From positions 2,053,544 to 2,117,543 of the forward strand of contig NW_003314269.1 in the NCBI RefSeq assembly GCF_000143415.4: a stretch of 64,000 bases of DNA, written 5' to 3'. Position 1 is the stretch's first letter, and every line of letters begins with the position of its first letter. The translations under genes were made by a program, and so were the position numbers. The notes under the pieces are model-generated. The model was given only the letters and a program-made list of their open reading frames with translations, was not told the DNA's origin and did not search any database. This document shows positions 2,778-39,104 of the stretch, in pieces. The DNA comes from Selaginella moellendorffii. Lineage: Eukaryota > Plantae > Lycopodiophyta.

Positions 2778-3310
2778 CGCCAGGGCAAGCTCAAGAACAC
2801 CAGACGGCAAATCTGTCCGCCAAACCTGGAGAGGTAGCAAAGGAGAAGGCGCTGGACGGGCATCCGAGACGCATTATCCAAATGCAAAGCATTTTTCTCT
2901 GTGAATCCTGTGAATTTAGATCGCTAGAATGTAGAACCCGCGCATAAACCCTAGCTAACGCCTCTCTCTCTCTCACTCCCGCCCTAAATAAGAGGCTGAA
3001 ATACCTAGGCCCAGAGAAGCAAGACTTTGCTAAACGTTTCTTCTAGCTAGTTTTTGAAGAGCGCCGCAACATGTGACCTCCACGATGCGGCGCCGCAGCG
3101 GCACGAGGGAGGTATTTTCGGCGACATAGTAGCATTTACTTTGCCCGGTAAAACCACGCCGCGATAAGAATCGCTGACGTGGCGTTGCCCGTGCAACTGG
3201 GAAGCTGTCCGCGTGTGGGCACGTGGAGATTGGCCTCGGCCACGACCACTACACACCGTCCGTACAACTTACGTGGGTCACAGCGCCCAGGTCATTGTAG
3301 GGTTTTTGCG

Positions 3311-4759
3311 ATGATCAATGTAGCACCGCCTAGGGTTCTAGCGCCAAGAAGCAGGGCGCTATCGGGAATTCCACTCCGCGCATTGTCGAAATCGTGCTCC
3401 ATCTCGGGTCCGCCGGATGATTTCAGCTACAGGGAAGCGGTGTCGATGGACACTGAGGAGATCGTGGGGACGCGATGGCCTCAGCTGATTGATATTGTGC
3501 GCGAGGGATCACTCGTAGCGGTGAGGAATGTGAATGCGGGTGAAAATGGTGAGCCGGAGCTGGTGATTCTCGTCGGGACTGCTCATGTGTCCCAGGTTTC
3601 GGCGCAACAGGTCGAGCGCGCGATCAAGACAATCCGTCCCGATAATGTCGTTGTGGAGCTCTGCAAAAGCAGGTAAGCATGTAGCACTCTATCTCTAGTA
3701 AACAATGGGTGAGGATTTTGGATGCCGCAGGATTGGAATTATGTATTTGGATCCGTCAATGGCGAATTCCACCGCGAATTTCTTATCGTTGACAGGCACG
3801 GATCGCAATGCAGCTTTGGCTCGTAGTTTTAATCTCGGTAATCTATCTTTTATTTAAAATATAGCTTCCATTCGATTTCATTTTTTGTTTTCTCAGGTGG
3901 GAGATCAGCATTTTTTCTGAGATTGCTGCTTGCCAGTGTTTCAGAAAAGATTTCTAAGTCTGCGGCTGTGCCAGTTGGCGAAGAGGTAAGACAGTTCATT
4001 GACGTAAAAGCTGGATATTCATGGCGATTGCTTCTTACAGTTCAGGGCTGCAAGAAGAGCAGCGAAAGAAGTTGAAGCTCAGCTTGTTTTGGGTGATCGG
4101 CCTATTGAAATCACTGTAAGTGTAGTTTTGCCGGGAGCTACTTGTTAATGTTTTGTGTAGTTTCTGTAGTTGAATCGCGCATGGCGCGCTTTGACGTGGA
4201 AGGAGCGTCTGCGTCTTGCTAACACGTTCTTGCAGACATTCCTGTTTGCCAATGTTGACGCATCAGAAGCAGCGTTGAAGGTGAAGGCTTTTATGGATTA
4301 TAATTTACTGTTTCTGACTTTGTTAATGCAGTCGATGAAGTCCGACGATGTGATTTCAAGCATGTATTCATTTATGAGCTCTCAGTTTCCTTCTCTATTG
4401 CGACACCTCGTTTGGGAGCGCGATCTGGTGCGCTTTCTTTTAGAATAGTCACTTTCCTTTGATGTAGTCGTTTGACACTTAGCTTTGTTGTACAGTATAT
4501 GGCGTGGTCTTTGAAGCGCAGCAAAGCAGTTACGGGCTGCAAGACTGTGGTTGGAGTTATTGGAAGGGGTCATCTCTCCGGAGTAGTTTACGCTCTCCTT
4601 CACAGTCAGGAACACTTGAGTTTCCGGGACCTGGTCGGTAAAACTGAAGACTCGATAGCAGATCCCTTCAGAATTTACAGAGGCATTATTGCCGAAGGCA
4701 TACTTGGGCTTCTTCTATGGTTGCTCTACAGCTACATTAGCGCGAACTTGGCTGTGTAG
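3311..4759 (+). CDS. TraB-domain protein, copy 1 (apparently intact, with putative N-terminal targeting peptide)
   Basis: Motifs ILVGTAHVS...IRPDNVVVELCKSR, LVLGDRPIEIT, WERD and VVGVIGRGHLSGV, plus a C-terminal hydrophobic segment. Spliced through short GT-AG introns from ATG 3311 to TAG 4759. Confidence 0.85.
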
Positions 4760-4794
4760 TCCACCAAATGTTCCTCAGTCAGGCTGTTAGCTAT

Positions 4795-7700
4795 TTACAG
4801 CACGGGCTGGGAAAGTACTCTCTTGACATGGTTGGAGAGTTTGGCCTGTACTTTATTGGTACCTGGAAAGACGTTCATAATTCTGGCCGCATTGAGAAAG
4901 AGCTGCTTGCAAGCTTGTGGCAGCGCGCCGGGCTGCAGAGTTTCGTACAGAAGCTTCTGCATGTTCTTGTTCGCAAGTGCTTGGACCTCACTTAGTGCTT
5001 CACTTTCAGTTAACTGAGGATTCTCTTCAAGGTAGATGGTGATACTGTTGAGGCTTGAATCCACCTGGAAAAGCTCGAATGGTGGTAAGGTATTTCCTAT
5101 TTCGTCTATTTCTTCGGGTTTACCTTGTCCGTGTGTGTATCTTGTACCAGGCGTGAAGCAGTGTTCATCATTTGGCAAATGGCCGAGTCTTTTATGTCTC
5201 CGGTGGTGGCGAGCGTTTCGCCGACGAAGTACATAGTGCTCCGGACAGCAGGCTCGATGCTTGAATGTGAGGCCTTTAGATATTCCTCCAAAGTTGGATT
5301 GTTGTCTGACATTTTCCACTTGGTTCTCTGCAGTAGGCTCGATAGCCACGTTTTCCACTGCCAAAGCAAATATTGATCAGATTTATCAACGCTTCTCACC
5401 GAAAACACTTACGATTTCTCGCAGCGCTCCTCCTATACTCCGGCCTTGGTACAAGAAGCCCTGCTTGCTATGGTTTTGAACGATGTTATAGAGCTCGACG
5501 AACAGTATTTTCACTTCGGCGGAGCAGTTTCCAAGCGAGTTCACGTTCCACCTGTGCATCAGCTGTCAGATCTCGAGTGGCATTGAATTTGTGGCGTGAA
5601 TTACCTCTCGACATTGTTTATGAGATCCTCAAGTTCTTTGGTGGACCCCAGGTAGTCAAAGTATTCATTAATACCGAGTGATATGAACCAGCATTGCGAC
5701 CATATAATCCTTGCTGCTGAGAGCTCCGGCTCGAAGATGGTTGCGGCAGCTGAATAGAACGTGTGCTCCAGTTTGCTGCGGGAGAATCCTTTGAACATTG
5801 ACAGGCTGCTCTCGTCGTACCACCTGTGATGGATTTCGGGTGAGTATATCTTGTTTTACATATATACTTTCACCACCTTTCAAGTTGCTGAAATTCTTTT
5901 CTGTGCAAAGCCTGACACATGTTGAAGTCTGCCTTCGCGAGCTCTAGGAAAATTGAATTGTTGACGAAGGGCATCCTGTATCAGTTACAGGAGTTAGCTG
6001 GCAGCGTTGATTTCCGTGAAAAGATTCTCACCTGTAGAGGCTCTTCCCGATCCAGACATCGTCAGCCGCGTACTGATCGATATATCTTCTTGTTGCCAGT
6101 CTTTCTAATCTAGCATGCATTGGGTTGTCAAGCGCAAACTCGACCTGTAAAGTGTTCACAGGTCAGTTTTGTTTTGTGACATGCTCTAACGCAGACCTCT
6201 CCTGGCAGATCTTTAGAGATAATCCACTTGTCGTACAGCTGATTCTCTCGGCGTTTTCCTTCGAGAAACTTTCTGGCAAATGAGCCTGCTTCTTCCAGGA
6301 TTGTTTCGCCAGGAAACATCAGTTGAGAAGCCCGGTACAAGTTGTACATTCCTGTCACTGCTTGACCCGCTTGCCCGCTGAAGCAGACGAAGGAATCGCC
6401 CTCTTGGAAGTTTTTAAAGGCGTCTGTGTTGCACAACATGAGAGGTGAAGAAAGAAGCGGGTATGGCTTGGTGAGTACCTGGTGATATGTCGTATCCGTG
6501 ACTTCGCAAGAGCCGGAAGGCCATGGAAGTATCGTCAGCGTCTTGAACAGGTGAACCTCTGGCCCATGCTATTCCTTTGTCTGTCCAGTATCTGTTACAA
6601 GTTCTCACGTTGTGTGTTTGTCATAGGTGGTACTACGCATACACACCTGTACACGTAGTCAAGAGCTGATTTAATCTCTTGAGTGAAGTAGCGAGAAATT
6701 CCCAGGCGTTGTAAACGGTCAACTACCCAGAGATGCTCAAACAGATCCACTGGGTATCCACCTGGTACTGTCGAGAAACAAGAGTTTTTACGTCAGGAGT
6801 TCTCGGAGGTAAAGTTTCACACCTGCGCAGTTGAATCTCTTGACGAGGTTGTTCAGGTACTGCAGGCATTTCTCGTTTCCCGTATGCATCAGTGCGCATG
6901 CTGTGGAGGCGGGGCTGAATAGCAGTGAACCATCTGGTGACTGCAGTTTTATGACCTTGTCCCAGTCTATAGTCTTATAAAGTCCTTCCAACGAATACAG
7001 GAGAGTGGTCGGATAGTTTTGGACCACATTCATGGGTATTCTGCGTGCGGGTATCATGTCAGTAAAGTTTTCTCAAGTTGAAACATTTTCTATGTCTAAC
7101 CTTTCAAGTTTCTTCTTCCTTTCAGCATAAATTGTTTGGAGCATGGGCGCTGTATAGTCGATGTCAAGCTCGAGTGCCATGGCCTCCTCTATCATTGCCG
7201 GAAACACAATTTCAAATCCTATTGGCATGTGAGTACTGTCCTCCATCTCCATCTCAGGCATAGTTTTGCGAATAAACTCGAGGGCTGAATGAGAATGAGA
7301 TGGTTAGTCATTGTTTTTCTTCTGAAAGTGATTACTTAGTTACCTTTGTGAATAATCTTGTCTCCGGTGTTCCAGGTTTTGAGAGCTATTGCACATGCCA
7401 GTGTCGAACAGATGCGATCACACGTAAGAAACAAGTCTCTATCACCCCAGGATCCATCCTCGAGCTGATTGACCATGATCCAGTTTAGGCACATGGGAAA
7501 TTGAGGCGTGTTGCTGCCATCCAAAGCTGGTACTCGTGCCACCCAAGCCGTATCGTAGGCTGACACGGATATCTCCCCGTCGTGCAGAGAGTTCAACATG
7601 CTTCTTACGGTTTCGACGAGTTCCCACTTTCGTCCGCCATCAGTCGCTGGAATTGTCTGCAGACCAAGAAGAATTCCGATCAGGACCTCCGGCCTTACGG

Positions 7701-8105
7701 GATCTTGCAGAACATACTTCTGGGACTTGCCGAGGTGTTGAAAGCTTCCGTGCGGGAGTTTCCACGCGAGATGAAACTGGAGATAGTGTTAAGTTAGCAG
7801 CAAGCTCACAACCGGGTGAGTTAGTTCTCTTTCATACCTGGAACTGATGCGGTCGGCACTGCAGGTAGTGAAGGCGTGGTTTTGGAAGCATCGTCGTGGC
7901 CTGGGAACAAAGACAAGAAGTTAGCCGCAGGAGTCATCACAGGAGTGAGTGCCTTGGTCTCCTTACCTCTCGCTTCTAGTTTCTGTGCTACAACACCACG
8001 ACTTACAGGCGTCGTCCTGCAGAACATGGAAGAGGAAGAGGAGGAGGCAAGGAAGGCTGCATTCCATACAGTTCCAGCGGCAGAAACAGCAGCTGCTGCT
8101 GCCAT
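4795..8105 (-). CDS. Monofunctional class II diterpene synthase (CPS-like), copy 1, with LYS/PGG in place of LHS/PNV
   Basis: [15 protein letters not shown] and the class II DXDD motif (VQDADDT) are present. Class I motifs are degenerate (INEYFD for DDxxD; [10 protein letters not shown] for NSE/DTE). Ala/Ser-rich transit-like N-terminus. Manual splicing gave a continuous frame to the stop at 4795. Confidence 0.9.
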
Positions 8106-8227
8106 TTGCGGCTGCTCCGCCCGCCTTTCCTCTCTCTCTGTGCCCCTGCCTGGAGCAAAGGCAAGGAGGAGCAAGAATATATCGGAGCAATATCTGAGCA
8201 GCAGCTGGAGCAGAAGCAGGAAAAGGG

Positions 8228-8400
8228 CTAACCTTTCAAGTTTCTTCTTCCTTTCAGCATAAATTGTTTGGAGCACGGGCGCTGTGTAGTCGATGTCAAG
8301 CTCGAGTGCGATGGCCTCTTTTTTTTGCGCGAAACACAATTTCAAATCCGTACTGTTCTCCCATCTCCATCTTAGGCATAGATGATTAGTCATTGTTTTT
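8228..8400 (-). pseudogene. Deleted fragment of a diterpene synthase exon ([26 protein letters not shown]) fused to the 5' UTR of copy 1
   Basis: Matches ~7096-7320 and ~35994-36200 in the same orientation, with internal deletions. Confidence 0.85.
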
Positions 8401-8469
8401 CTTTTGGCTTGGCTTGTGGCTTGTCCCTTGTCTAGGGCCAGCTCTAGTGAACTTGAGTGTTTGGTTTCT

Positions 8470-11370
8470 GACACAAACCATAGGAATATTTTAAGAATAT
8501 TTCATGGTAACATTTTAAGGGCTTAGGGTTTGCTCTCTTGTTTGTTTCATTAATATCGGAGTAATATGTTCTTTTGGGGATGGTAGGTGTAAAATATTGA
8601 TCTTGGTGTTAGTGATGATGGACCATTTAAGTTCATGCTCACTCCCATCTAAGGGCCTTAACCCTCAGTCTCAACCTCAAGTCGGTTTGGAAACATTATT
8701 AAAGAGTTATTTCAAGACTGATTCTTGGACCTCATTATCCCTATTATACTTTTGGAACCCCTTATGGGACAATTGCTTTAAGCTTTCACCCCATAACCTA
8801 TATTAATATTTAGACTTAATTTCGAACTTGATATCAAACTCGGTCTCAGACTAGGTTTTGGACTCAATTTCAGACTTGATCTCAGACCCAGCCTCGAACT
8901 TAGTCCTGCACTCAACTTCGGACTCGGTCTTGGACCTGATCTCGGATCTCGGATTCAATTTCAAACTCAGTCTCGGATTCGGTCTTGGACTTGGTCTTGG
9001 ACTCGGTCTCGAACTCAATTTTGAAATTGGTCTTGGACTCAATCTCAAACTTGGTCTCATTCAATAAATTTTTTATCATTCCAATTATGGTTTCAGGAAT
9101 CCTTTAGCCTATAACATTTTGGGGAATTAATTCCTTACACAACCCAAATAACATCATTTTCTTGAAAGATCTTGGGTAAACCAATGATAAAATCTATTGA
9201 GATGTTATCCCATTTATTCTCAGGTACATATAAAGGATGATAAAGGCTAATAAGTTTTTAATGATCAACTTTAACTGCCTAATAGGTCAAACAACCATGT
9301 ATGTACTTTTCAACATCTGACTTCATCCCAGGCAAAAAAAAATGCCTTTTCACCAACATATATGTTTTCAGTACCCCCAATGCCCAACACTTGGCATATC
9401 ATGACACTCAACAAAAATCTATTTGATGAGTTTGTCCATACAAGGAACCACTATATGTCCCTTCTTCATTAGGATTCTATCTTATATCTCGAATGACACA
9501 AACTTGTCACCCTTCAAATCTGTAGAGGCATCCCTCAATAAAACTTTCATGCGAATGTCAATGATAAAGGAGTCAAAGTCAACAAACTCCTTAAACTCAT
9601 CCAAAAGATTGCTAGATAGCTTCATGAACGAAATAGAATTTACCATCTTAAATAATGCATCACCTACTTTATTGTCACCTCCATGCTTATTGATCATATT
9701 TTAACAAACATTTCTTGTAGGAATTCTTGCCAATGAGCAAGGCAGCTTTGAAGATCCTTTTTGTCGACTGAAATACTAGAAAGATTGATGATCTAAATTT
9801 ATATGGAAGTCATCTATATAGATAATGTCACAATTTCTTCACAACAACAATCACAACATACAACTCCTTGTCTCAAGTAGGTTAATTCTGCTGTGTGGGA
9901 TCAAACTTATGGCTCATAAATGCAAGAAAATGCCTAACTTGAAGCAATATGGCCCCAATAGCAATATCACTTACATCATTGCCTATTATTAATTATAGAT
10001 TCCACTATAGTGACTTTAGCATTTGTTGACCCCTTTAGGACAATCCTTGCCTTGATATCTAACCTTGTGGTAATGAAAATAACTACTCTTTACCTTGTCT
10101 TTCTCTCGTTGGCCTAAATAAAGTTGCTTAGCCTCATTGCCATTTATATGCTTTGAGCCACGACGGAATAATGATCATTTCTTCCCCAAATATGAAGCAT
10201 TGGCAGGTTAGTCATCATATTGACTACCCTATAGACCATTTTGTTGACCAGAGTTGACCAAATTAACTAGTGAAAAAATCTGAGCATCAATCAATGTTGT
10301 TAGAAAATCCTTTTTGACCTTCTATTGTACATCCACTAAACTCAAACCTTTGATAAAACATTGCACCTTTAGCAAATCATTATAAGTGCCCATGAGACTA
10401 ATGCAAAAATAATGGAACTTGCAAGCATATACATCTAAAGATAAAGTCCCCTATTGGATCTCTAATAACTGATTCATGAGATTAGTTTTGATGTAGTTCT
10501 TCCTGAAGAAGCATAACCTATAAGCTTCATCACAAAAAAATCAATTTTTACCTTATCCTTAGAAGGATTGTGATTCCAACCAAGAATCAACTTCTTGACT
10601 ATCACAAACATTCAATGATGACTTCTATTCCACAATACCATAATCCTTGGTATACTTGATGTACCAATGGTAATCATGGATATGAGATTAATTCAACTTT
10701 TGAGGGTCCATGCAAAGCAAGAAATCCTTAATGAGATTGATGGAATCTTTAACCTTCTTAATGCTGCTTTGAAGTTTCTTTGCTACACAACAACATTATT
10801 AAGAGTTTCAATGTTGTTGTTGTTCTCACTGTTGTTCTCACTCCTGTAAAGGAAATTGATTGTGGTGCTCCTAGCTCATATGGAGTGGTGCCCCACATGA
10901 GTACCATGTGGTTTATTAATCCTCACTCAGGGCTTGGGCTTTCCCTTTGGGAAAGTGGGGGAGTAAAGGTACCCATATTGAGCCATTAGGCCATAGTGTT
11001 TGCCCCTGAGATCCTGAACCAAGTGAGGCACCCAAGGCTTGGGATTTAGAGGATCCTATGATCAAGTCTTGTTGTACCAAGGATTTTAGGAACATGGAGG
11101 CTTGATGTGTTTGGCTACTTGTGTTTGCAAAAAGTGTAGCCGAACTTTAAATCCAATCTAACTCAAGGAGGGGGATTAGGAGAGAATTTAGGAATTCATG
11201 AATGGATAGCTAACACTTCATTGTTTATGTAGTAAGTATCAAAAACCAAGTAAAACTAAACAGGAGCTAGTACAATAGGCGAGAACCTTGGCAAGGGAAC
11301 TTAATTAATGCCAAGGCAATGGTGATTGAGTAGACGAGGTAAGCTAGCAAACTAAAAAGGAAAAATTTAT
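8470..11370 (-). mobile_element. Degenerate Ty3/gypsy retrotransposon remnant (RNase H-integrase)
   Basis: Minus strand reads LYHPLYVPENKWDNISIDFIIGLP (integrase) and ECHDMPSVGH (HHCC region) around 9170-9410, with many stops and frameshifts. Boundaries are approximate. Confidence 0.65.
8810..9060. repeat. Degenerate 6/12-bp tandem repeat (tcggac/tcggtc/ttggac)
   Basis: Repeated units such as ggtcttggacttggtcttggactcggtctcgaactc. They produce the spurious PSPRPSPR ORFs. Confidence 0.8.
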
Positions 11371-11379
11371 GGTTTACAG

Positions 11380-12740
11380 GTTGTTGTGGATAGTTTAATA
11401 AAGATGGTTCACTTCTTCCTAGTGAAGATGACTATTAAAGCTTTTGAACTTGCTTAGTTGTTTATAAACCAATTATTCAATCTCTATGGTTTGTTAGGTG
11501 ACATTGTGAGTGATCAAGATCCCAAGTTCACGTTTAAGTTTTGGCAAACAATTTTTGAGAAGCTAAAGACTAAGCTAAGCATGAGTAGTGGTGAGCACCC
11601 ACAATCAAATGGGCAGACAGAGCATATAAATCAGCTATTGGAAGATATGTTAAAGTCTTTTGTAGGAAACTTGACTTGACAGGGAGTATGGGAAAAGTAT
11701 TTGCCTTTGCTTCACTTTGCTCATAATAGCACTCATCAATCAGCTATTAGTATATCTCCATTTATAGTGATGTATAGTTATAAGCCTAAATCTCCCATAA
11801 GTTTGAGTTTAGCTTTGGTTTGGGTATCTCATGCTTGTGATTTCCTGGAAGATATGCAAAACAAGCTTGAGTTGGCAAAGTTGAATTTGAGGCAAGCTCA
11901 AGATTGAGACAAAAAATTGGCAGATGAGCATCATTATCATCAAGAGTACAAAATTGGTGACAAGGTTTTCCTTGAGTTGTTAGATGCACAACAGTCTTTG
12001 AAAGGAGATGGTAGTCCTAAGTTGTCTCTATAATATTGTGGGCCTTAGACAATTTTACAACATGTGGGAGATCTTGCATACACTTTGGATTTACTAGCTT
12101 GTTCGAAAATTCATCCAACATTCCATGTGAGCAAACTTAAGCATGTTTGCACTCTAGTGATGTTGTGGATCAATCCATCATCCAAGTCCTAGAAATTAAT
12201 GTTGAGAAGGCTTAAAGATTTCCTAATATTCTTTTTCAAAGATTGGTGAAAAACACGCTAGAAAACAACTAGGGAGTCGTTAGTTCAATGGAATGATTAA
12301 TCCATGGACAAAACTATATGGGAAACTAAAGATGACATGAAGAGAGTGTTTATAAGTTTTGGTTATGACTTAGATGACATTCTTGAGGAAGGGGAGAATT
12401 AGGTTCTATAGCCATAGTGTTATATGATTTGAGCCAATTGTTCTATTCTTATTCTCTTGTTTCCATGACCGTATTGTCATATGAGAAAGCTATATTGCTT
12501 TTTTTCTTTTGTAGCTACTGTCACAACGTTAGTGTTACCATTTTCACATCTTTTCTCCATGGCTATATTGCCTTGGACTCCCTTCATGTGAGGCTGGTTA
12601 GCTTCTCGAGGCTGCCATACGTGGTTGGGTCATGAGGGCACAAACTATAGAATTATTCTAAGAATATTCTATGGTCTATGGGATTTAAGGCCGTATCCCT
12701 TTTGTGATATTCTAGAGATTTTTGGTGGAACCTTCATATA
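11380..12740 (+). mobile_element. 3' end of a chromovirus-type gypsy element (integrase core, GPY/F region, chromodomain-like segment, PPT, probable 3' LTR)
   Basis: IVSDQDPKFT..FW..HPQSNGQTE, IHPTFHVSKLK and LVQW..IWE motifs. Polypurine tract gaggaaggggagaa at ~12385-12398. Confidence 0.75.
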
Positions 12741-13336
12741 ATAATTTAAAAAGGTTAAAAGTTGGTGTGAGAATTTTAGAGAAAAATACCTATGATCACA
12801 ATTGAAAATGTTGATTAAACTCTTGAAATCATCTGTAGCTACTTGGAATTCTTGTACTAGGCAAATAAATTTTTGGACATCAAATAAAAAGGAGCAAAAT
12901 AAAATATCACCGTGTTTTAATTGTAATGCCCTAGGCTACCTAGGTCATGTGAGACAAAATTTATGATAATGATGAAATTGATGTTTATGAATGACTATAT
13001 TTTATTCAAATAAACATGTTTAAACAAAATTCATGTTCCCCTAGGTCATGCATGACGAAATTCCCTACACTTAGAAATTTTTTCTTGCGAATACTTTGGG
13101 CCAATACATGTGAGCTCCCATGTATGAGCTTGTCCCCCAGCCATGCTGTCATTCCCAGTTTGCCATGTCAAAGCTTATGTGGCAAAGGAGAATGAGATTT
13201 AACAAGAGGCATATTCCATGGGGAGAATTGCATAATGTGCCTTTCCCATGCTCACTCCTCGCTCCCTCTGCAGCGTGCTTAAGTCACGCCCAGCTCTGCA
13301 CCCTAAATGTTTAACAACTAATTATAAATTAGTAAG

Positions 13337-14500
13337 GCCAAACTTTAATTAATAAATGTTGTTAATAGATATGTTAATGACTATAGCTTTATAATTAGCC
13401 AATGAATGAAAGGAACACTCAACCTTTTATTTTGCATGTGGATGCTTCTGAAGTTAATCTTAGAGGCATATTGATAATTTATAAGTATATTTGGTTTAGG
13501 TTTTTCCTCATTATGTTTTATGTTTGTGCTCCTTATATTTTCTTTCTTATTTTATTCATTCTCTTTAGTATTATGGCTAGATTGAAATATATAGATCATG
13601 CTCAAGATACTATTCTTTTTTTTCTGATCTTATTGAGAGAACTAATAGTAAATTAAATTATTTTACCTTTTGTATTACAATTAGTCTTCTTTTAAAAGAG
13701 AGATAATGTGAAATATGTCATCAACCAATGAAATATTAATTTGATAATCAAGGTTGTAAAGATGGTTTGAAGTGGAATTATAAAAATTGCAATACCACAA
13801 GATCTTTTAGAATTAATACTTGTTTTATAAATAGTAATTTCACATTTGCTTAAATGCTTAGAGTGATATTTTTTTGGTGCATTAAAATGCCACAAGATCA
13901 AACTCGTATTGAGTGTAGTGTTAAAATTGAGCACACAACAACAAATTGGTACAACTTTTGTCATGATATTTGTGTTACAATGAGGTAGTCAAAAGATTAG
14001 TGGTCTAGAAGAATTTTGGAAATTGATGAAATTAAGTTTAGTAAGAAAAAATATAATTGTGGTAAAAGAGTAGAAAGTCAATGGGTCTTTGGAGGAATTG
14101 AACATAATTCAGATTGAATATTTATGGTTTTGGTGGTGGATCGTACTACAAAAACTTTAATTGATATATTATATACATATGTTGAACCAGGTAAGTTCTA
14201 TTTCTATTATTATTCTCAACTAATATTTATAATCAATTTTTTAGGATAATTATATATAGTGATTGTTGGGCTGGTTATAATTCAAAATGGTTGAATCAGT
14301 TAAATTTATTCATTATACAGTCAACCACTCCCAAAATTTTGTTTATCCCGTGACTAGAGTTCATACAAATCATATTAAATCAACATAGAATGTAGTGAAA
14401 AATCCTTTACTCACTATGGTACAACAAAAGGATTATACAACTCTTACTTTCAAGAATATATTTGGCAAAAGATATATATTAAAAGAAAAGAAACTACATT
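13337..14500 (+). mobile_element. Merlin (IS1595/ISXO2-like DDE) DNA transposon remnant, 5' part
   Basis: NWYNFCHDIC, EIDEIKFSKKKYNCGKRVESQWVFGGIE, DRTTKTL..YVEPG, intron 14191-14244, IIYSDCWAGY, HYTVNHSQNFV.P.TRVHTNHIKST, YFQEYIWQK. Contains frameshifts and stops. Left boundary is uncertain. Confidence 0.8.
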
Positions 14501-16627: not shown

Positions 16628-19600
16628 TATAGCGCACGTGGTTTTGACCCTTTATCCTATGGTGATTTACCATAGGATAACACCACGAAGCGGAACCTAA
16701 ACCCTCTTTGTGCCACGTGACAGATGCCATATGTCACATGCCACGTGTCCATGCCACGTGTCCATAGGAACCCGAGGTTCAAGGCCTTGGGCCATTGAAC
16801 GAAGGAATGGTGCCAAACTCCCAAGCATGGAGCCAAGGAGTGACGGAACCGAACCACGGAGCAACTCCCGAGCATAAAGCCCAAGGAGCGAAGGGACAGG
16901 AACCTGGAGCGACTTGGAACAGTCCTGGAGCAACCAGCATCCCAATGCTAGGACCAGCACGCAAAACGGAGCCAAACGGAGTCTGGCGCTATTTCGGCAT
17001 ACCGGTGGCCTAACGCGAGAATATGGGTACTCCACCAGCTAGCATGGAATGGAACTTGGGCTTAGACCCAAGCCGGACGCAAAACAAGGACAGGCACACA
17101 AGCGGGAGTTAGATTATGCCTCAGGTTGGTCGGCCATGCCCAACCTACCGACTATCCCTACTATACATTTGGAACTCCCCCACAGCCCCCCCCCCCCTTG
17201 AGGAACACACGCTTTGGGCTTTCACCCCAAGCCTCCCTTAGTATCAGGAGTTAGTCTCTGGGACAAGCTCAAAATTTACTAAATATGGAATGTCCCTAGA
17301 TTGTGAATTTGGACATGGGACGAACACTATTGTGTTCGGGACGATCTCTACATTCCATAGATATGCTAAATGAGAAAATCTGGACACTTTCCATAAATAG
17401 CATTTGGGACCGAAATGAGACCAACACAAAGGGCATGATAGCAAGGGTGTTTGGCAGACACGGTAAGCTATCATCTAGCGATATTGAGGGACCAATCTCA
17501 ATATCGCGGGGGTTCCCAACACTAGCAAGTGCAAGTCAACGAATGAGTTTCTCTAACCAAGTCAAGTATGCTTGACAAATAGCACGTAAGAATTCCGTCC
17601 TTATGCCCATCTGGTCAAGTGCACACGCGAAGACTAGTTTCTCAACTAGCTTAGGCAGAGATTGATAACGGGCCCAGCAATACCGACCTCCTACCATCGT
17701 GGCAGTAAGGTAAGAGTGTCCATAAGGACTAGCCGACAGGTAACTTTCGATACCCGAAGTCACATTCATGACACTCTCCCCCCCTAGGGAAGATCGACGT
17801 CCTCGTCGATGCATACTCAAGTCTAGAATACCGCCAAGGAAACAACTCCAGAAAAAATTCACAGTACTCACACTATGTGAGAAATGCACCAACTTAAATG
17901 AGTTAGGGGTAACCTCTTTGTCTAATGCGGATGCGCTACCAGCTCAGACACCTTCTGGCCGTTGCCGACAAGGAAATGACCAACGGAGTCAGCCACCCTT
18001 GCTGCTCTGAGAGTCACCCAACTTACAAAAGTGTGATATGCCCCTGCCTGCAGGAACATAGAGAGAGAAGCCAAAGGCCCCAACCCTCCTAAGCAAAGAA
18101 ACCAAACCCGTCGGTAAGGTTTAGATAGACTATTGTAAACAGGCAGTTAGAGTTGTTTACACGGTCACGCCCTTTTTAACGGAATAAGGAACATCGACAG
18201 AGAGGCGGGTTATGTGACCAATCGACAATAGCTACCCCATGACTAAAGATTTCAACATGCACACAAAGTGCCAAAGCCAGTCTGCCTATACTAGCCCAAA
18301 CTCAAAGATCAATAGATGGACATTATCAAAGTCAAAGACAATGATATCTTAGAGACTTAATTACTAGTGATGAAATCTTAGATTAGAACATAATAGTATT
18401 CTAAGTAAGTTATCATCCGATAAACCAATATTATTGTAGATAGGAACCACCAAGATCATCATAGTTGGTAAACATAGGATTCACCATCAAACAAAATTCA
18501 ATAGTAAGTATATCATCAAGTAAACTCAATGATAAAGTTTAACTATTAAAGATTGCAGACAGAATGCCAAACAACTTACGAAAAATAACTCAAAAAACAC
18601 AAAGTATCATGGACTGACAAGCAAAATGCTCGCAAATGTATCACCCAAAGGAAATAACATCCAAATCTATCAAAACTAACTCAAGCAACAATCAATAGAA
18701 GAGAATGAATGCGGTAAGACCAATAAACACTCATTCCTGCCAACTATCACAAAAGCCAATCTAAATAGATCCCAGCTAACAATATCAAGGAACTCAAGTT
18801 GCCTAAACAAGTGTCAGCAACATCCTATTGATGTCTCAAACCCAAGAGACCAATCTAAGGCAAACCACAAAAAACATGTGGTATTGCGAAAAGCTAAAAG
18901 TTTATCAAAGAGAATAACTAACCATCATGAAAGATCATCAATCATCCCATCAAAAGAGATATGCATAATCATTGTCGAAGAAACAATCTATCAACAATAA
19001 TCAAGTAAAACCTCTGATAAGGATAATCAACTATCTTAGATGATAATCAATCATCACCAATGACTACAAGATGCAAAAGCCAACTTCAATATTGAAGTTA
19101 ATGAGCCATAATGCCTTCCCCAACAACTTCTAACAAATGAAACAACGAGCATAAAACTCAAAGAATCAAAAGCTCGAAGAAGTCTATAGCCAAGTCTTTC
19201 CTAACAATGATCACAAATCTTACATGAGCTAACTTTAATGCTAAAGAAGAAATTATGGTGCAACCCACAATATCTTCCTCAACACATCCATAAGCTAAAT
19301 TTCATAATGCCAAAGCTAATGAAGAGCATATCTGCATCAATCCAAAAGCTAAGCATAACGAAGCTATGCTCAACAAGTGATCACCAAACGATCCTTCATG
19401 AATCCATCTATAGCAATACGTAACTCACATCATAACAAGCACAAGAAGAATCATCAATGATCGATATATTCCAACTCAAATCCAATAAGGATTTAAACAT
19501 TTCAATATCGATCACTAACTCTTCCGCTTGTAGAGTTAGCATAGTCCACAACTGAATCACTTTTCAAGGAAAAGCCAAAGCTCAACCTTTACTAAATAAT

Positions 19601-31012: not shown

Positions 31013-31909
31013 CAGTTGCAAATGTTGCAGTAATACCTGGCCATTCTGAAGTCGGAGCATTCAGGATTGTGACAGGATCCTGCGACTGGTTGCACTTCGA
31101 GGCACTGCATACACACCATTTCCTTCGTTTCATGCCTGCTACTAAAAAACAAGAGACCGCTGAGTATCTGCTTGATAACCGAAACAGCACAAGAGTACCT
31201 GTTCATGGGATGGTCACTCGCTCGGTCATGACAAAACCGGCAAGCGGCCCGATTCTTGAAGTGTGCTCACAACCATATAAACCTCTGACGGGATCATGAT
31301 AGGACAGGTTGCGCCCAGGAATGTCTTCAGACGTATCTGTTTCTTGTAAAGAATGCTGCTGAGCCGCAATCCTGAAAAGGAAAGAAAGTATTAGAAATGG
31401 TGACAATCAGCGGGCAAGCTACATAAAACTTGAGAGGAGGAGCTAACCTGCTCATCAAATTTCATATAAGGTACGTTTTCCTCCGAGGATCCAGGGAACT
31501 GTCACTAAAAACCGTACGGATGGCAGCCTCTAGTTCCTTCTGGTTCATTCTAAAGATGTACTGCCATCTTGGTTTGAACTTTCCGCTTCAAGTTTTTGGG
31601 GTTTGTCCTTCTCGTCACTTCTCATGCAGCAGTCTTGAGCGGCATCGTACTTTGAGCAACTTTTGCAGCTTTCAGATTTAGTATCCGAATCTTTGGCAAA
31701 GTAATCAGCCACCAGTTGCAAGGACTCGCTAGAGCCGGAAGGTGGAGTCGAAGGATCCTTTGTAGCTGGAGGAGACGAGGGAGACGACTTAAGTGAGCTA
31801 TCACTCAAGCATTTGTCAAACATCGTGTTTTGTCTCCAAGACTCAGTAAGCCATGGGATCATTGATTGCAAGACCTCTGCACCTGTAGTCCCAACTATTG
31901 TACCAACTA
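31013..31909 (-). pseudogene. Partial duplicate of the BRUTUS-like gene (end of hemerythrin region to CHY zinc finger)
   Basis: 31751-31909 matches 1-216 with deletions. Also contains FRMNQKELEAAIR..LDPRRK, IAAQQ..YGCEH and EMVCMQCLEVQPVAGSCHNPECSDFRMARYYCNICN (CHY finger). Confidence 0.9.
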
Positions 31910-32224: not shown

Positions 32225-33655
32225 ATGATCACAGGGTTCTAGCGCCAAGAAGCAGGGCGCTATCGGGGATTCCACTCCGCGCATTGTCGAAATCGTGCTC
32301 GGGTCCGCCGGATGATTTCAGCTACAGGGAAGCGGTGTCGATGGACACTGACGAGATCGTGGCGACGCGATGGCCTCAGCTGATTGATATTGTGCGCGAG
32401 AGATCACTCGTGGCGGTGAGGAACGTGAATGCGGGTGAAAATGATGAGCCGGAGCTGGTGATTCTCGTCGGGACTGCTCATGTGTCCCAGGTTTCGGCGC
32501 AACAGGTCGAGCGCGCGATCAAGACAATCCGTCCCGATAATGTCGTTGTGGAGCTCTGCAAAAGCAGGTAAGCATGTAGCACTCTATCTCTAGTAAACAA
32601 TGGGTGAGGATTTTGGATGCCGCAGGATTGGAATTATGTATTTGGATCCGTCAATGGCGAATTCCACCGCGAATTTCTTATCGTTGACAGGCACGGATCG
32701 CAATGCAGCTTTGGCTCGTAGTTTTAATCTCGGTAATCTATCTTTTATTTAAAATATAGCTTCCATTCGATTTCATTTTTTTTTTTCTCAGGTGGGAGAT
32801 CAGCATTTTTTCTGAGATTGCTGCTTGCCAGTGTTTCAGAAAAGATTTCTAAGTCTGCGGCTGTGCCAGTTGGCGAAGAGGTAAGACAGTTCATTGACGT
32901 AAAAGCTGGATATTCATGGCGATTGCTGCTTACAGTTCAGGGCTGCAAGAAGAGCAGCGAAAGAAGTTGAAGCTCAGCTTGTTTTGGGTGATCGGCCTAT
33001 TGAAATCACTGTAAGTGTAGTTTTGCCGGGAGCTGCTTGTTAATGTTTTGTGTAGTTTCTGTAGTTGAATCGGGCATGGCGCGCTTTGACGTGGAAGGAG
33101 CGTCTGCGTCTTGCTAACACGTTCTTGCAGACTTTCCTGTTTGCCAATGTTGACGCATCAGAAGCAGCGTTGCAGGTGAATTTGTTTTTTGGATTATAAT
33201 TTACTGTTTCTGACTTTGTTAATGCAGTCGATGAAGTCCGACGATGTGATTTCAAGCATGTATTCATTTATGAGCTCTCAGTTTCCTTCTCTATTAAGAC
33301 ACCTCGTTTGGGAGCGCGATCTGGTGCGCTTTCTTTTAGAATAGTCACTTTCCTTTGATGTAATCGTTTGACACTTAGCTTTGTTGTACAGTATATGGCG
33401 TGGTCTTTGAAGCGCAGCAAAGCAGTTACGGGCTGCAAGACTGTGGTTGGAGTTATTGGAAGGGGTCATCTCTCCGGAGTAGTTTACGCTCTCCTTCACA
33501 GTCAGGAACACTTGAGTTTCCGGGACCTGGTCGGTAAAACTGAAGACTCGATAGCAGATCCCTTCAGAATTTACAGAGGCATTATTGCCGAAGGCATACT
33601 TGGGCTTCTTCTATGGTTGCTCTACAGCTACATTAGCGCGAACTTGGCTGCGTAG
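32225..33655 (+). pseudogene. TraB-domain gene, copy 2, with frameshifted N-terminus
   Basis: Body is nearly identical to copy 1, but the start reads ATG ATC ACA GGG TTC TAG (stop at 32240) after a net 13-nt deletion. An in-frame ATG at 32341 could still give a protein lacking the targeting peptide. Confidence 0.75.
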
Positions 33656-33690
33656 TCCACCAAATGTTCCTCGGTCAGGCTGTTAGCTAT

Positions 33691-36600
33691 TTACAGCACG
33701 GGCTGGGAAAGTACTCTCTTGACATGGTTGGAGAGTTTGGCCTGTACTTTATTGGTACCTGGAAAGACGTTCATAATTCTGGCCGCATTGAGAAAGAGCT
33801 GCTTGCAAGCTTGTGGCAGCGCGCCGGGCTGCAGAGTCTCGTACAGAAGCTTCTGCATGTTCTTGTTCGCAAGTGCTTGGACCTCACTTAGTGCTTCACT
33901 TTTAGTTAATTGAGGATTCTCTTCAAGGTAGATGGTGATACTGTTGAGGCTTGAATCCACCTGGAAAAGCTCGAATGGTGGTAAGGGATTTCCTATTTCG
34001 TCTATTTCTTCGGGTTTACCTTGTCCGTGTGTGTATCTTGTACCAGGCGTGAAGCAGTGTTCATCATTTGGCAAATGGCCGAGTCTTTTATGTCTCCGGT
34101 GGTGGCGAGCGTTTCGCCGACGAAGTACATAGTGCTCCGGACAGCAGGCTCGATGCTTGAATGTGAGGCCTTTAGATATTCCTCCAAAGTTGGATTGTTG
34201 TCTGACATTTTCCACTTGGTTCTCTGCAGTAGGCTCGATAGCCACGTTTTCCACTGCCAAAGCAAATATCGATCAGATTTATCAACGCTTCTCACCGAAA
34301 ACACTTACGATTTCTCGCAGCGCTCCTCCTATACTCCGGCCTTGGTACAAGAAGCCCTGCTTGCTATGGTTTTGAACGATGTTATAGAGCTCGACGAACA
34401 GTATTTTCACTTCGGCCGAGCAGTTTCCAAGCGAGTTCACGTTCCACCTGTGCATCAGCTGTCAGAGCTCGAGTGGCATTGAATTTGTGGCGTGAATTAC
34501 CTCTCGACATTGTTTATGAGATCCTCAAGTTCTTTGGTGGACCCTTGGTGGTCAAAGTATTCATTAATACCGAGTGATATGAACCAGCATTGCGACCATA
34601 TAAGCCTTGCTGGTGAGAGCTCCGGCTCGAAGATGGTTGCAGCAGCTGAATAGAACGTTTGCTCCAGTTTGCTGCGGGAGAATCCTTTGAACATTGACAG
34701 GCTGCTCTCGTCGTACCACCTGTGATGGATTCGGGTGAGTATGTCTTGTTTACATATATACTTTCATCACCTTTCAAGTTGCTGAAATTCTTTTCTGTGC
34801 AGAGCCCGACACATGTTGAAGTCTGCCTTCGCGAGCTCTAGGAAAATTGGATTGTTGACGAAGGGCATTCTGTATCAGATACAGGAGTTAGCTGGCAGCG
34901 TTGATTTCCGTGAAAGGATTCTCACCTGTAGAGGCTCTTCCCGATCCAGACATCGTCAGCCGCGTACTGATCGATATATCTTCTTGTTGCCAGTCTTTCT
35001 AATCTAGCATGCATTGGGTTGTCGAGCGCAAACTCGACCTGTAAAGTGTTCACAGGTCAGTTTTGTTTTGTGACATGCTATAGCTCATACCTCTCCTGGC
35101 AGATCTTTAGAGATAATCCACTTGTCGTACAGCTGATTCTCCTGGCGTTTTCCTTCGAGAAACTTTCTGGCAAATGAGCCTGCTTCTTCCAGGATTGTTT
35201 CGCCAGGAAACATCACTTGAGAAGCCCGGTACAAGTTGTACATTCCTGTCACTGCTTGACCCGCTTGCCCGCTGAAGCAGACGAAGGAATCGCCCTCTTG
35301 GAAGGTTTTAAAGGCGTCTGTGTTGTACGATATGATAAGTGATGAAAGAAGCGGGTATGACTTGGAGAGTACCTGGTGATATGTCGTATCCGTGACTTCG
35401 CAAGAGCCGGAAGGCCATGGAAGTATCGTCAGCGTCTTGAACAGGTGAACCTCTGGCCCATGCTATTCCTTTGTCTGTCCAGTATCTGTTACAAGTTCTC
35501 ACGTTGTGTGTTTGTCATAGGTGGTACTACGCATACACACCTGTACACGTAGTCAAGAGCTGATTTAATCTCTTGAGTGAAGTAGCGAGAGATTCCCAGG
35601 CGTTGTAAGCGGTCAACTATCCAGAGATGCTCAAACAGATCCACTGGGTATACATTTGGTACTGTCAAGAAACAAGAGTTTTTACGTCAGGAGTTCTCGG
35701 AGGTAAAGTTTCACCATTCCTTTACCTGCGCAGTTGAATCTCTTGACGAGGTTGTTCAGGTACTGCAGGCATTTCTCGTTTCCCGTATGCATCAGTGCGC
35801 ATGCTGTGGAGGCGGGGCTGAAGAGCAGTGAACCATCTGGTGACTGCAGTTTTATGACCTTGTCCCAGTCTATAGTCTTATGAAGTCCTTCCAACGAATG
35901 CAGGAGAGTGGTCGGATAGTTCTGGACCACATTCATGGGTATTCTGCGTGCGGGTATCACGTCAGTAAAGTTGTCTCGGAACATTTTCTATGTCTAACCT
36001 TTCAAGTTTCTTCTTCCTTTCAGCATAAATTGTTTGGAGCACGGGCTCTCTATAGTCGATGTCAAGCTCGAGTGCCATGGCCTCCTCTATCATTGCCGGA
36101 AACACAATTTCAAATCCTATTGGCATGTGAGTACTGTCCTCCAACTCCATCTTAGGCATAGTTTTTCGAATAAACTCGAGGGCTGAATGAGAATGAGATG
36201 GTTGGTCTTTGTGTTTCTTCTGAAAGTGATTACTTACCTTTGTGAACAATCTTGTCTCCGGTGTTCCAGGTTTTGAGAGCTATTGCACATGCCAGTGCCG
36301 AACAGATGCGATCATACGTAAGAAACAAGTCTCTATCACCCCAGGATCCATCCTCGAGCTGATTGTTCATGATCCAGTTTAGGCACATGGGAAATTGAGG
36401 CTTGTTGCTGCCATCCAAAGCGGGTACTCGTGCCACCCAAGCCGTATCGTAGGCTGACACGGATATCTCCCCGTCGTGCAGAGAGTTCAACATGCTTCTT
36501 ACGGTTTCGACGAGTTCCCACATTCGTCCGCCATCAGTCGCTGGAATTGTCTGCAAACGAAGAAGAATTCCGATCAGGACCTCCGGCCTTACGGGATCTT

Positions 36601-37025
36601 GCAGAACATACTTCTGGGACTTGCCGAGGTGTTGGAAGTTTCCGCCCGGGAGTTTGCACGCGAGATGAAACTGGAGACAGTGTTAAGTTAGCAGCAAGCT
36701 CACAACCGGGTGAGTTAGTTCTCTTTTATACCTGGAACTGATGCGGTCGGCACTGCACGCAGTGAAGGCGTAGTTTTGGAAGCATCATCGCGGCCTGGGA
36801 ACAAAATAAGGATCCACCCGACAAGCAGTTAGCCACAGGAGTCATCACAGGAGTGAGTAGCTTGGTCTCCTTACCTCTCGCTTCTAGTTTCTGTGATACA
36901 ACACCACGACTTACATGCGGCGTCCTGCAGCTGGACCAGAACAAGGAAGAGGAAGAGGAGGAGGAGGCAAGGAAGGCTGCCTTCCATGCAGCTCCAGCAG
37001 CAGCAACAGCAGCTGCTGCTGCCAT
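33691..37025 (-). CDS. CPS: Monofunctional class II diterpene synthase, copy 2; probable ent-copalyl diphosphate synthase
   Basis: DXDD (DADD), LHS (His codon 35898-35900), PNV (35651-35659) and FEHLW motifs are typical of ent-CPS. Class I motifs are degenerate. Native 5' UTR and upstream region are retained. Confidence 0.88.
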
Positions 37026-39104
37026 TTGCGGCTGCTCCGCCCGCCTTGCTCTCTCTCTCTTTCTCTCTCTCTCGGCCCCAAAGGCACTGGAGAAGCACGA
37101 ATATATGGGAGGAATATCTGAGCAGCAGCTGGAGCAGAAGCAGGAAAAGAGAAGCTAAGGAAAGGAAAGAGAGAAGAAAGAAGAAGAAAATGCTGAAAAG
37201 GCAGAACGGGGGGGACAGGACAGTCCCCGAGCAACAGGTAATCAAGCGAAAACACAAAAGACAATTGATTCAAAACAACACTAAGTTCGGAGGATCTGCA
37301 GTATCAATGTGCGGAGGAGCACCTTGTGAGGCAGCTGGTGGATCACGAAAAGCAGCGCCAGCAGTGAGGCCAACGGAAAAGCAACGCGAAGCCAAATTGC
37401 CGACTGGGTGGCTTGGCTCCCTGCATTGGACGTTAGTCGGAGGTAAGGATGGATGGCTCTTCTCCTTCTCCTCCTCCTTCCTGCTTGTTTTTCTTCATAC
37501 ACTTATATATCCCTTGATTCTCTGGCTCACCAAGTGTTATATGACAGGTGCTGCCAAAGCGAATATTGGGCCCTTGAGTGCTCATTATTCCACATGGAAT
37601 ATATTCCTCATGTTGAGGAAGGCATCGGGACCGAGAGTTTCAGACAAAATGACTATTTCCATCCACTTGGACGGTAAATGGCTGCTTTTAATAGGGGTCG
37701 GGCTCTAATGTTTATCCTTTTTCGTCCATTTTTGCCTACAGTGAAAGAATTAAACGACGCTAGAAAAGTGGCATGGAGCAGTGAAATGGTGAACCTTGCA
37801 TCCTCTCTCCCGCTCCCGGGTTGATTTCACGACCGACCAAGGCAAGCGAGCAAGCGCCAATGAGCGGTGTCTTGTGACATTATAATGTTTTTTGATGCTG
37901 GTCAATGTAGAGCCGTGTTCCAAGTCTCGCGAAAAGAACACTCCGTGCGGTTCCTTGCGTGAAGCGATCTCAGTAAAGTAAGTTGTTTGTTTGAATCGAA
38001 GTCTTCATGCTATCTCTCTTTCCAGAAATGCAGAAGACTGATGGAGCAAGAGCAAAGTAAGTAGTTTCTTAAATCTTTTGGTCACCTCTCTTCTCCAGGA
38101 AGCTACTCAAACAATTGCCTGGTGGTGGACTGGGCCAAAGCTGCAGCATAAAGCATCCCCATGCTCCACCACGTTGTGGCATGGACAGAGAGATTCGCCA
38201 TGGATGGAAACGAGCAGTGCACAACGAAAGTGTGCGTATATATCGATCGAAGAAAAAAGTTCCTGCCGGCGATCTGGATGGATCGGTAAAGCCAGCGGAT
38301 CAGGAAAAAATGGAGCGCAAACTAGTACGTGATTTTTTTCTTTCTGTTGACTAAAACGCTTCTCTCGCTTGCTTTGTTTCGTTGGTTTCCAGATCTTATC
38401 TCTTTGATCATAAAGTCTTCCCTGTTGTCGGCCTTTCGCCCTGATAGATTTCATGAAATATAGCGCTGCTACTGAGACGTTGTGGAACCATATCAGTGAA
38501 TGGAATAGAAATAAAAGCCATGGTCCCATTTTCTTGCTATATGGTACCCCAACATTATTTCACTGACACAGCTCTATACTACTACAATCTTCCACGTTGA
38601 CTAGTTACCCACCCATTTTTACAAATTCCACCCCCCAGGAAGGAATAACATTAACTGCATGTTGACTGTTTCACCCGCCTTTCGTGTGTGACGGCCTGAC
38701 CACCTGTACGGACGCGTGTGGCCCGTCGCTTTCCCCGTCCACGTGCCCGTCGTGCCGCGGGCATATTCCCGCCGATTCGGTGGGCCTTTAAAACCCCAGC
38801 GCTCTTTCCACCGGGCCACCAGGGGAACCACGCGCGTACGGTGAAATGTTGACTCGTCGGGGCCCGTCAGGTGGATGGCGCGACGGGCGAGATAGGCGAG
38901 ACGAGCCGGCCATTGGAAGGGCCGCCCGTCACCGCGACGAAGAAATCAACACACTTGGACGAGAGAGAGACCTTGGAAATGCCAGTTGACAATTTTGGCC
39001 CAATGCTCTGTGTCGTGACATTTTAGGTCGACTCCTTTCTCCCAATCCCTCTCATTCTTCCATTTCTCCCATTTGGCGGTCGATCGATCGAGAGGGAGAG
39101 AGAA

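Follow-up and report, generated by a model that had tools for sequence, protein, structure and literature searches.

Two CPS genes and their class II sites

The 64,000 nucleotides of Selaginella moellendorffii DNA considered here (contig NW_003314269.1, positions 2,053,544 to 2,117,543 of the forward strand; this whole stretch is called the window, and positions are counted from its first letter) carry two genes of the copalyl diphosphate synthase (CPS) type. Both lie on the minus strand of one scaffold, 29 kb apart and within distinct flanks, and they are called copy 1 and copy 2 in the following. Copy 1 is the gene listed as XP_002967364.2 / EFJ31963.1 / SELMODRAFT_144572 ("copalyl diphosphate synthase 2-like"), and residues and columns are numbered after the XP_002967364.2 protein. 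Its exon structure was built with homologous proteins as guides (cluster representatives of at most 65% identity for one exon), and the three short 5' exons were settled by RNA joints and the RefSeq model. The resulting 15-exon model translates identically to the RefSeq protein, all introns are of the GT-AG type, and neither the reading frame nor any splice site is damaged.

4795..8105, minus strand: copy 1, CPS-like class II diterpene cyclase gene, ATG to stop, 15 exons, 836 amino acids
8105-7967, 7900-7838, 7776-7718, 7656-7344, 7284-7101, minus strand: exons 1-5 of copy 1
7040-6823, 6767-6647, 6591-6479, 6423-6197, 6144-6032, minus strand: exons 6-10 of copy 1
5975-5877, 5823-5605, 5551-5413, 5357-5124, 5064-4795, minus strand: exons 11-15 of copy 1
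33691..37025, minus strand: copy 2, CPS gene with the motifs LHS and PNV, 840 amino acids, XP_024527840.1

Mapped onto copy 2, the same 15-exon model gives the exact XP_024527840.1 translation, the mature part of which is 100% identical to Swiss-Prot J9R388 (SmCPS2 / SmTPS10, "Copalyl diphosphate synthase 2; Terpene synthase 10"). These identities were taken from a profile search and then from a comparison of the nine members of the 90% cluster of copy 2. According to a passage in a review citing Li et al. 2012 (PMC3650682), SmTPS10 and the closely related SmTPS9 are monofunctional and convert geranylgeranyl diphosphate (GGPP) to ent-copalyl diphosphate (ent-CPP). The initial annotation had left open whether the two genes of the window were among the Selaginella enzymes already assayed; this is the case for copy 2, and copy 1 is neither SmTPS10 nor SmTPS9. 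A full-text literature search by the accessions of copy 1, in a body of text that did not include the SmTPS-numbering paper (Li et al. 2012), returned no assay or mention of it.

The two copies differ in the pair of residues by which the class II cyclisation is normally brought to its end. In AtCPS, H263 and N322 hold the water molecule that acts as the base (PMC11795633; PMC9169658; PMC9945934), and both of these residues are replaced in copy 1, as is the Val next to the Asn.

6995..6997, minus strand: TAT, Tyr268 of copy 1 in CTG TAT TCG (LYS), in place of the dyad His of LHS
6757..6765, minus strand: CCA GGT GGA, Pro327-Gly328-Gly329 of copy 1 (PGG), in place of PNV, with loss of the dyad Asn and the adjacent Val
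6531..6542, minus strand: DADD, the DxDD general-acid motif, intact in copy 1 and the same in copy 2 (35425-35436)
6977..6979, minus strand: Tyr274, another Tyr in place of a His (EGLYK in copy 1, EGLHK in copy 2), six residues past LYS in a column that is poorly conserved in the family

Tyr268 aligns with H263 of AtCPS (residue 180 of the 3pya chain) and with the LYS Tyr of AgAS, and PGG aligns with PNV of AtCPS and with PCH of AgAS. At the corresponding positions copy 2 has CAT (35898-35900; His of LHS) and CCA AAT GTA (35651-35659; PNV). The step from NV to GG took three nucleotide changes in two adjacent codons (6762, 6761 and 6758), all of which are specific to copy 1. Exon 8, which carries DADD, is free of differences between the copies over its 113 nt. 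The initial annotation had described these codons of both copies, the three substitutions and the intact DxDD motif and frame, and each of these statements proved exact when read on the minus strand.

Copy 1 has the three-domain (gamma-beta-alpha) architecture of terpene synthases, with matches to PF01397 (1.9e-49) and PF03936 (6.5e-45), to AgAS 3s9v over the full length (E 1.5e-199) and to the beta-gamma part of AtCPS 3pya (E 4.9e-189). As judged from the translated exons and the AgAS alignment, the class I motifs are degenerate in both copies, with NEYFD for DDxxD and QDTHTDK for (N/D)DxxTxxxE (NSE/DTE), and thus both copies are monofunctional class II enzymes. The FEH histidine (LFEHLW) of the gibberellin-type CPSs, which we take to be H331 of AtCPS, is kept in copy 1. 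In CPSs of primary metabolism this residue has been linked to inhibition by Mg2+ and GGPP (PMC9169658). Copy 1 resembles the assayed SmTPS10 and SmTPS9 in its locus, its 15 exons, DADD, NEYFD and QDTHTDK, and it differs from them in that both have LHS/PNV and copy 1 has LYS/PGG. The substitutions W488M, P493E, E496A and G505A (window about 6040-6130), in columns that are 90-96% conserved, are also common to copy 1, copy 2 and SmTPS9, and the second position of DxDD is Ala in all three genes; SmTPS9 and SmTPS10 have nonetheless been reported as active.

When set beside the known classes, copy 1 has neither the LHS nor the PNV of the gibberellin-type ent-CPP synthases. It shares with ent-kolavenyl diphosphate (ent-KPP) synthases the aromatic residue at the dyad His (Tyr268) and lacks their PNV, and it has the LYS of the TPS-d3/h site for normal CPP together with PGG in the place of PCH. 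The changes N328G and V329G put smaller or non-ligating residues at the dyad Asn and next to it, as is characteristic of enzymes forming 8-hydroxy-CPP (LPP). Neither LYS with PGG nor two consecutive glycines at this position were found in any of the approximately 320 relatives compared, and the combination is without description in any characterised enzyme.

Transcription and origin of copy 1

Parts of a 1-kb stretch that is rich in copy-1-specific sites are present in 20 public runs, the best seven of which contain 61-76% of its words. Four runs, each from a different study (X1, X5, X6 and X8), supplied contigs that were placed on positions 4700-8300 at an identity of at least 99%. In X1, X5 and X6, which stem from three studies, contigs lack introns at GT-AG borders and hence derive from RNA; X8 is a run of 2024 which we guess to be DNA. 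Thirteen of the 14 exon junctions of copy 1 occur as joints in the X1, X5 and X6 contigs, including those of the three short 5' exons, and the junction between exons 6 and 7 is implied by the record coordinates of an X5 contig. Contig 7 of X5 (1717 nt) spans exons 4-13 with zero differences and carries both LYS and PGG. The Tyr268 codon is covered free of differences in X5, X6 and X8, and the PGG codons are covered by contig 4 of X1 and by contig 7 of X5. Copy 1 is thus expressed, and contigs from independent runs support the variants outside the assembly. This excludes two of the outcomes that the initial annotation had regarded as fatal to its proposal, an untranscribed gene and variants without support from reads. 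Compared with the window, the copy-1-type contigs show single-letter differences at 5392, 6022, 6223, 6322, 6437, 6920 and 7880. Several of these fall at sites at which copy 1 and copy 2 vary, which suggests allelic variation among accessions or small conversion tracts.

Copy 1 and copy 2 are parts of a tandem duplication in which the segments 3332-8225 and 32233-37149 are 96.2% identical across 4934 bp (self-BLAST).

3332..8225: downstream unit of the duplication (about 4.9 kb), copy 1 and a convergent TraB-family gene (self-BLAST, TraB Pfam match)
32233..37149: upstream unit of the duplication, copy 2 and a second TraB-family gene (self-BLAST)
8228..8349, minus strand: CPS exon 5 fragment of 122 bp, about 92% identical to 7096-7219

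The exon 5 fragment lies directly at the edge of the duplication, only some 120 bp ahead of the start codon of copy 1, which points to a complex rearrangement that left copy 1 with almost no ancestral promoter. The co-duplicated TraB/PrgY/GumN-family gene lies on the plus strand at 3179-4759 and again at 32284-33655, convergent with the CPS gene in both cases; on the other haplotype, the TraB-family gene as called runs into the 3' end of the CPS. Following copy 2, at 31006-31802, part of the downstream hemerythrin/zf-CHY gene is repeated in rearranged form, 88-98% identical to positions 18450-19361 of the EFJ37888.1 locus on GL377565.1. The originally duplicated unit was thus larger than CPS and TraB, and about 3.3 kb of it was later lost.

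The assembly holds both haplotypes, and SmTPS9 / SmCPS1 (J9QS23) and XP_002960350.2, with LHS and PNV, are found on a separate 6.95-Mb scaffold. The EFJ37888.1 locus (GL377565.1) aligns to positions 47433-32233 of the window at 98.1%, including the upstream genes, copy 2 and its TraB gene, and it also aligns to positions 8225-1 at 97.3%, including copy 1, its TraB gene and the downstream hemerythrin/zf-CHY gene. Taken together, both alignments indicate that the GL377565.1 scaffold holds a single CPS gene between the same flanking genes, and that this gene is SmTPS9. SmTPS9 and SmTPS10 occupy syntenic positions (10001-14129 of the GL377565.1 locus and 33691-37025 of the window), their proteins are 98.4% identical, and they appear from their sequences to be haplotype counterparts and not paralogs, in contrast to their treatment as two genes in the literature. 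Copy 1 has no counterpart at the syntenic position of the other haplotype scaffold and is thus present on one of the two haplotypes. The record would need correction in that the two assayed CPS "genes" are apparently haplotype counterparts and the real second gene at the locus is copy 1. EFJ37889.1 was considered as a second copy on the other haplotype, but with a core identical to SmTPS9 it most probably represents the same gene in a shorter model.

In a three-way nucleotide comparison of copy 1, copy 2 and the gene of the other haplotype, 95 sites set copy 1 apart from the other two sequences, whereas 40 set apart copy 2 and 24 the gene of the other haplotype. The excess for copy 1 is found also in introns (17, 8 and 3 sites, in the same order) and in the upstream sequence (38, 7 and 3 sites), and it therefore reflects an older split and not a faster protein evolution. 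It is limited to the 5' 2.7 kb; downstream of approximately position 5500 the three sequences lie almost equally far from one another, with 7 sites unique to copy 1, 19 unique to copy 2 and 13 unique to the other haplotype. This limit might tentatively be explained by a later gene conversion, or by an origin of the one-copy haplotype through unequal crossing-over between the copies. These counts also bear on the possibility that the LYS/PGG copy is an artefact of the assembly or of the haplotypes, i.e., a mis-assembled allele, as could be suspected from an assembly of both haplotypes in which the other scaffold shows one CPS between the same flanks. We think that this is highly improbable, as the two copies are well separated on one scaffold with flanks of their own, sequence specific to copy 1 was recovered in four separate studies, from contigs of one run each, and the 95 sites at which copy 2 and the other-haplotype gene agree against copy 1 make it an allele of neither.

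Copy 1 has kept T172 and Q538, which are 98% conserved in the family and are replaced in both copy 2 and SmTPS9, and it is therefore a sister of copy 2 and not its derivative. The view of the initial annotation that copy 1 was recently derived from the neighboring ent-CPS thus holds in so far as the two are recent tandem paralogs and the dyad of copy 1 is the derived one, but not with respect to direct descent. A quick maximum-likelihood search gave the tree SwCPS + (P0166 + (copy 1 + (copy 2 + SmTPS9))), with SH-aLRT values of 100/99/100/90. Copy 1 accordingly nests with characterised TPS-c CPSs, in a Selaginella clade with SwCPS (named an ent-CPS by its source) and outside TPS-d3/h. P0166 ("copalyl diphosphate synthase 2-like") is an older paralog from a 6.18-Mb S. 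moellendorffii scaffold outside the window; it is 56-60% identical, has LYS/PNT and DGDD, and is by the published motif rule itself a candidate for a kolavenyl-type cyclase.

Constraint on copy 1 and the question of decay

The mature proteins of the two copies are 96.4% identical, with differences at 27 of 745 core residues, and the synonymous divergence is about 0.03. To judge where these differences fall, 124 family members were aligned, in which 189 of 738 columns are at least 90% conserved. LHS and PNV are ancestral, with His in 94%, Asn in 90% and Val in 93% of these relatives. Apart from 12 lineage-specific departures at conserved columns that are common to all three Selaginella genes, copy 1 has changes of its own, relative to copy 2 and the gene of the other haplotype, at only three of the 189 conserved columns, and these are H268Y, N328G and V329G. 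The statement of the initial annotation that the copies "differ at exactly the two motifs" is thus too strong in view of the 27 core differences. Counting the change from NV to GG as one event, we calculate a probability of about 1/17,766 (1/C(189,2); about 6e-5) that two events at conserved columns would strike precisely the His and the Asn of the dyad. The other approximately 16 derived substitutions of copy 1 all miss the conserved columns, which has a neutral probability of about 0.01 (0.747^16), and the exons contain 0 indels between the copies, compared with 20 gap columns in 601 intron positions. The sparing of the conserved columns and the absence of exon indels together indicate that purifying selection acts on the whole protein apart from the catalytic base. 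The replacement of the dyad is a targeted one.

The evidence for this replacement is positional and not rate-based. The initial annotation had looked to dN/dS by domain (the ratio of non-synonymous to synonymous change), and no signal of positive selection was found in pairwise, regional or lineage comparisons. The clustering of three substitutions within 5 nt was considered as a sign of selection and dropped, as similar multi-nucleotide clusters occur in introns and in the upstream sequence.

In our favored reading, to which we give a probability of roughly 55%, copy 1 is a young, expressed and haplotype-specific class II cyclase that would have been neofunctionalised, its product having changed from ent-CPP. 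From the sequence features described above we infer that it retained cyclase activity and makes a product different from ent-CPP, and hence a neofunctionalisation. Several observations weigh against this. As copy 1 is absent from one haplotype, at least half of the gametes can do without it, and it retains only about 120 bp of ancestral upstream sequence. The dN/dS between the copies is 0.53 overall and 0.84, 0.44 and 0.09 in successive thirds from the N-terminus, the copy 1 branch does not show an excess of non-synonymous over synonymous change in comparison with its sisters, and the rate test cannot separate a new function from a mild relaxation. The two glycines at a helix-adjacent position of the active site could simply cripple catalysis. 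Finally, intron 6, which separates the LYS exon from the PGG exon, has changed.

6768..6822, minus strand: intron 6 of copy 1, 55 nt (64 nt in copy 2)

The donor context of this intron is G|GTGTGA in copy 1 and G|GTAAAG in copy 2, with 9 nt lost beside the donor. The intron is spliced in X5 and retained in the sole X1 contig that crosses it (contig 4, unspliced over 6647-6978); such a retention would put a stop just before the PGG exon and truncate the protein.

Most of these observations would equally be expected of a decaying duplicate, i.e., of a dead or crippled enzyme in which the loss of the dyad is damage and which owes its continued transcription solely to its young age. The restriction to one haplotype, the new promoter context bordered by a stray piece of an exon, the weaker donor of intron 6, the dN/dS of about 0.5 with its high value in the N-terminal third, and consecutive glycines that none of about 320 relatives has at this conserved active-site position are all in line with such a decay. 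In contrast, copy 1 contains no stops, frameshifts or splice-site losses, its exons have escaped the indels that its introns have taken up, the other 186 highly conserved columns are unhit, and a correctly spliced full-length mRNA exists in at least X5. The loss of the dyad alone is also not lethal to the enzyme, as Ala at either position of AtCPS leaves a good catalytic efficiency (PMC11795633). We therefore regard decay as the most serious of the alternatives and still as unlikely.

Predicted products of copy 1 and other features of the window

The consequences of changes in the dyad are well documented in related enzymes, and the literature agrees with what the initial annotation had stated on the AtCPS mutants and of the conifer LYS motif with its different partner residue. 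In AtCPS, H263A or N322A yields ent-8-hydroxy-CPP (ent-LPP) with the efficiency mentioned above, and H263Y or H263F yields ent-KPP (PMC11795633). An aromatic residue at the dyad His predicts ent-KPP synthases, and the natural ones carry Tyr or Phe (PMC9169658; PMC11795633), whereas a change from Asn to Ser at the dyad gives 8-hydroxy-ent-CPP (PMC9169658). Conifer enzymes use LYS/PCH (PMC11795633; PMC9945934), and in AgAS the Tyr hydroxyl of LYS, hydrogen-bonded to the His of PCH, has been proposed as the native base (PMC13142921).

The closest precedent for copy 1 is a tandem array in Tripterygium wilfordii, in which TPS-c genes stemming from a gibberellin CPS have switched their products at the same His, Asn and Val positions. 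There, TwCPS3 (H268/N327/V328) forms ent-CPP, TwCPS6 (Y265/N324/V325) forms KPP and TwCPS5 (H/T326/A327 and T115) forms ent-8-hydroxy-CPP (PMC9214345). TwCPS3 is converted to a KPP synthase by H268Y and to an ent-8-hydroxy-CPP synthase by I115T/N327T/V328A, reciprocal mutants interconvert the products, and it was proposed that the Asn forms a hydrogen bond to the Tyr and thereby keeps water out (PMC9214345). Each of the Tripterygium paralogs has one side of the dyad changed, with identities of 87-90% among them and an age of 8-11 million years. Copy 1, in contrast, has both sides changed, is 96% identical to its neighbor, belongs to a lycophyte and occurs on one haplotype only.

Similar partial likenesses exist to the other groups of enzymes. 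The ent-KPP synthases (AtCPS H263Y/F, OpKOS of the liverwort Odontoschisma, TwCPS6) have, like copy 1, Tyr or Phe for the His of LHS on a TPS-c scaffold derived from an ent-CPS, but OpKOS (LYS/PNV) and TwCPS6 keep the Asn of PNV, which copy 1 has lost. The water-adding sites (AtCPS H263A/N322A, OlIAS with LHS/PSV, AbCAS with LYS/PSD, AgAS H348D/Y287F) resemble copy 1 in that the partner Asn or His is gone and that smaller residues occupy the PNV position, but none of them has Gly-Gly, those of the ent-type keep the His, and those bearing the Tyr are normal-CPP enzymes of TPS-d3. The bifunctional TPS-d3/h enzymes of conifers and lycophytes (AgAS and PdLS with LYS/PCH; SmMDS) share LYS with copy 1 and differ from it by the partner His of PCH, an active class I domain and their clade, copy 1 having PGG and no DDxxD.

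On this basis, a mechanism can be proposed for the favored reading. Copy 1 would be a plastid-targeted, monofunctional class II duplicate of a gibberellin-type ent-CPS with alpha, beta and gamma domains that is selectively maintained. It would still meet the requirements for the protonation and bicyclisation of GGPP, as suggested by DADD, the other highly conserved residues and the FEH His, and with the replacement of His268 by Tyr and of Asn328-Val329 by Gly-Gly it would have lost the pair that holds the water of the catalytic base. Without this base, the labda-13-en-8-yl cation would not be deprotonated at C17 in the usual way. Water residing in the space opened by the two glycines could then capture the cation, resulting in ent-8-hydroxy-CPP, or the aromatic ring of the Tyr could exclude water, so that 1,2-shifts would lead to ent-KPP. 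As the Tyr favors the rearrangement and Gly-Gly favors the hydroxylation, a choice between ent-LPP and ent-KPP is not possible, and we would roughly divide the candidate products into a hydroxylated labdane (40%), a clerodane-type rearranged product (35%), and another double-bond isomer or still CPP (25%).

The last of these possibilities leads to a further alternative, in which copy 1 still makes ent-CPP, or another stereo- or double-bond isomer of CPP, by means of an alternative base such as the hydroxyl of Tyr268, and the duplication would add dosage or a different expression pattern. Indeed, and this also speaks against a changed product, LHS and PNV are according to reviews dispensable for ent-CPP formation, and alternative bases are possible, with other arrangements found in other class II cyclases (PMC9945934; PMC11795633). 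The role proposed for the Tyr of AgAS and the FEH His kept in copy 1 would be compatible with this. However, a change from His to Tyr alone redirects both AtCPS and TwCPS3 to KPP, the Tyr of AgAS works together with the hydrogen-bonded His of PCH, in the place of which copy 1 has PGG, and copy 1 groups with the ent-CPSs and not with the normal-CPP enzymes of TPS-d3/h. We thus think that a retained CPP product is improbable, more so than decay, and that copy 1 most likely supplies a specialised diterpenoid branch and not ent-CPP.

It has been known that gibberellin CPSs give rise to specialised cyclases by duplication followed by changes in the dyad, and the natural cases are usually millions of years old and affect one side of the dyad. 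New in the present case are the combination of motifs, the young age of the duplicate, its occurrence in a lycophyte and the recognition of SmTPS9 and SmTPS10 as apparent haplotype counterparts. Copy 1, as an expressed derived form, lies 29 kb from the ancestral form SmTPS10, to which SmTPS9 corresponds on the other haplotype, and the pair constitutes a compact natural experiment in which three switch residues stand against a background of about two dozen further changes. It could be used to test how well the published motif rules predict the product when both switches are combined, and whether lycophytes form precursors of clerodanes or of hydroxylated labdanes. It is conceivable, at a little less than even odds, that copy 1 has been caught very early in neofunctionalisation with both halves of the dyad already replaced, and that it makes a scaffold new to lycophytes, such as ent-KPP, an 8-hydroxy-ent-labdane, or a mixture or new isomer.

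The remaining features of the window are mostly repeats. In the interval of 8.3-32.2 kb between the CPS copies, two direct repeats of 1.1 kb each (16630-17767 and 22730-23859; 94.5% identical, 6 kb apart) resemble the long terminal repeats of an inserted retroelement. The only open reading frames of at least 180 amino acids in this interval are 30730-31299, which is without a Pfam match, and 7821-8474, which straddles the lower edge of the interval and covers the first exons of copy 1; the other long open reading frames of the window likewise gave no Pfam matches. A head-to-tail tandem repeat of 0.9 kb is found at 59830-60736 and 60747-61644 (97% identical), and a dispersed 1-kb repeat connects 29660-30602 with 50551-51543 (91% identical).

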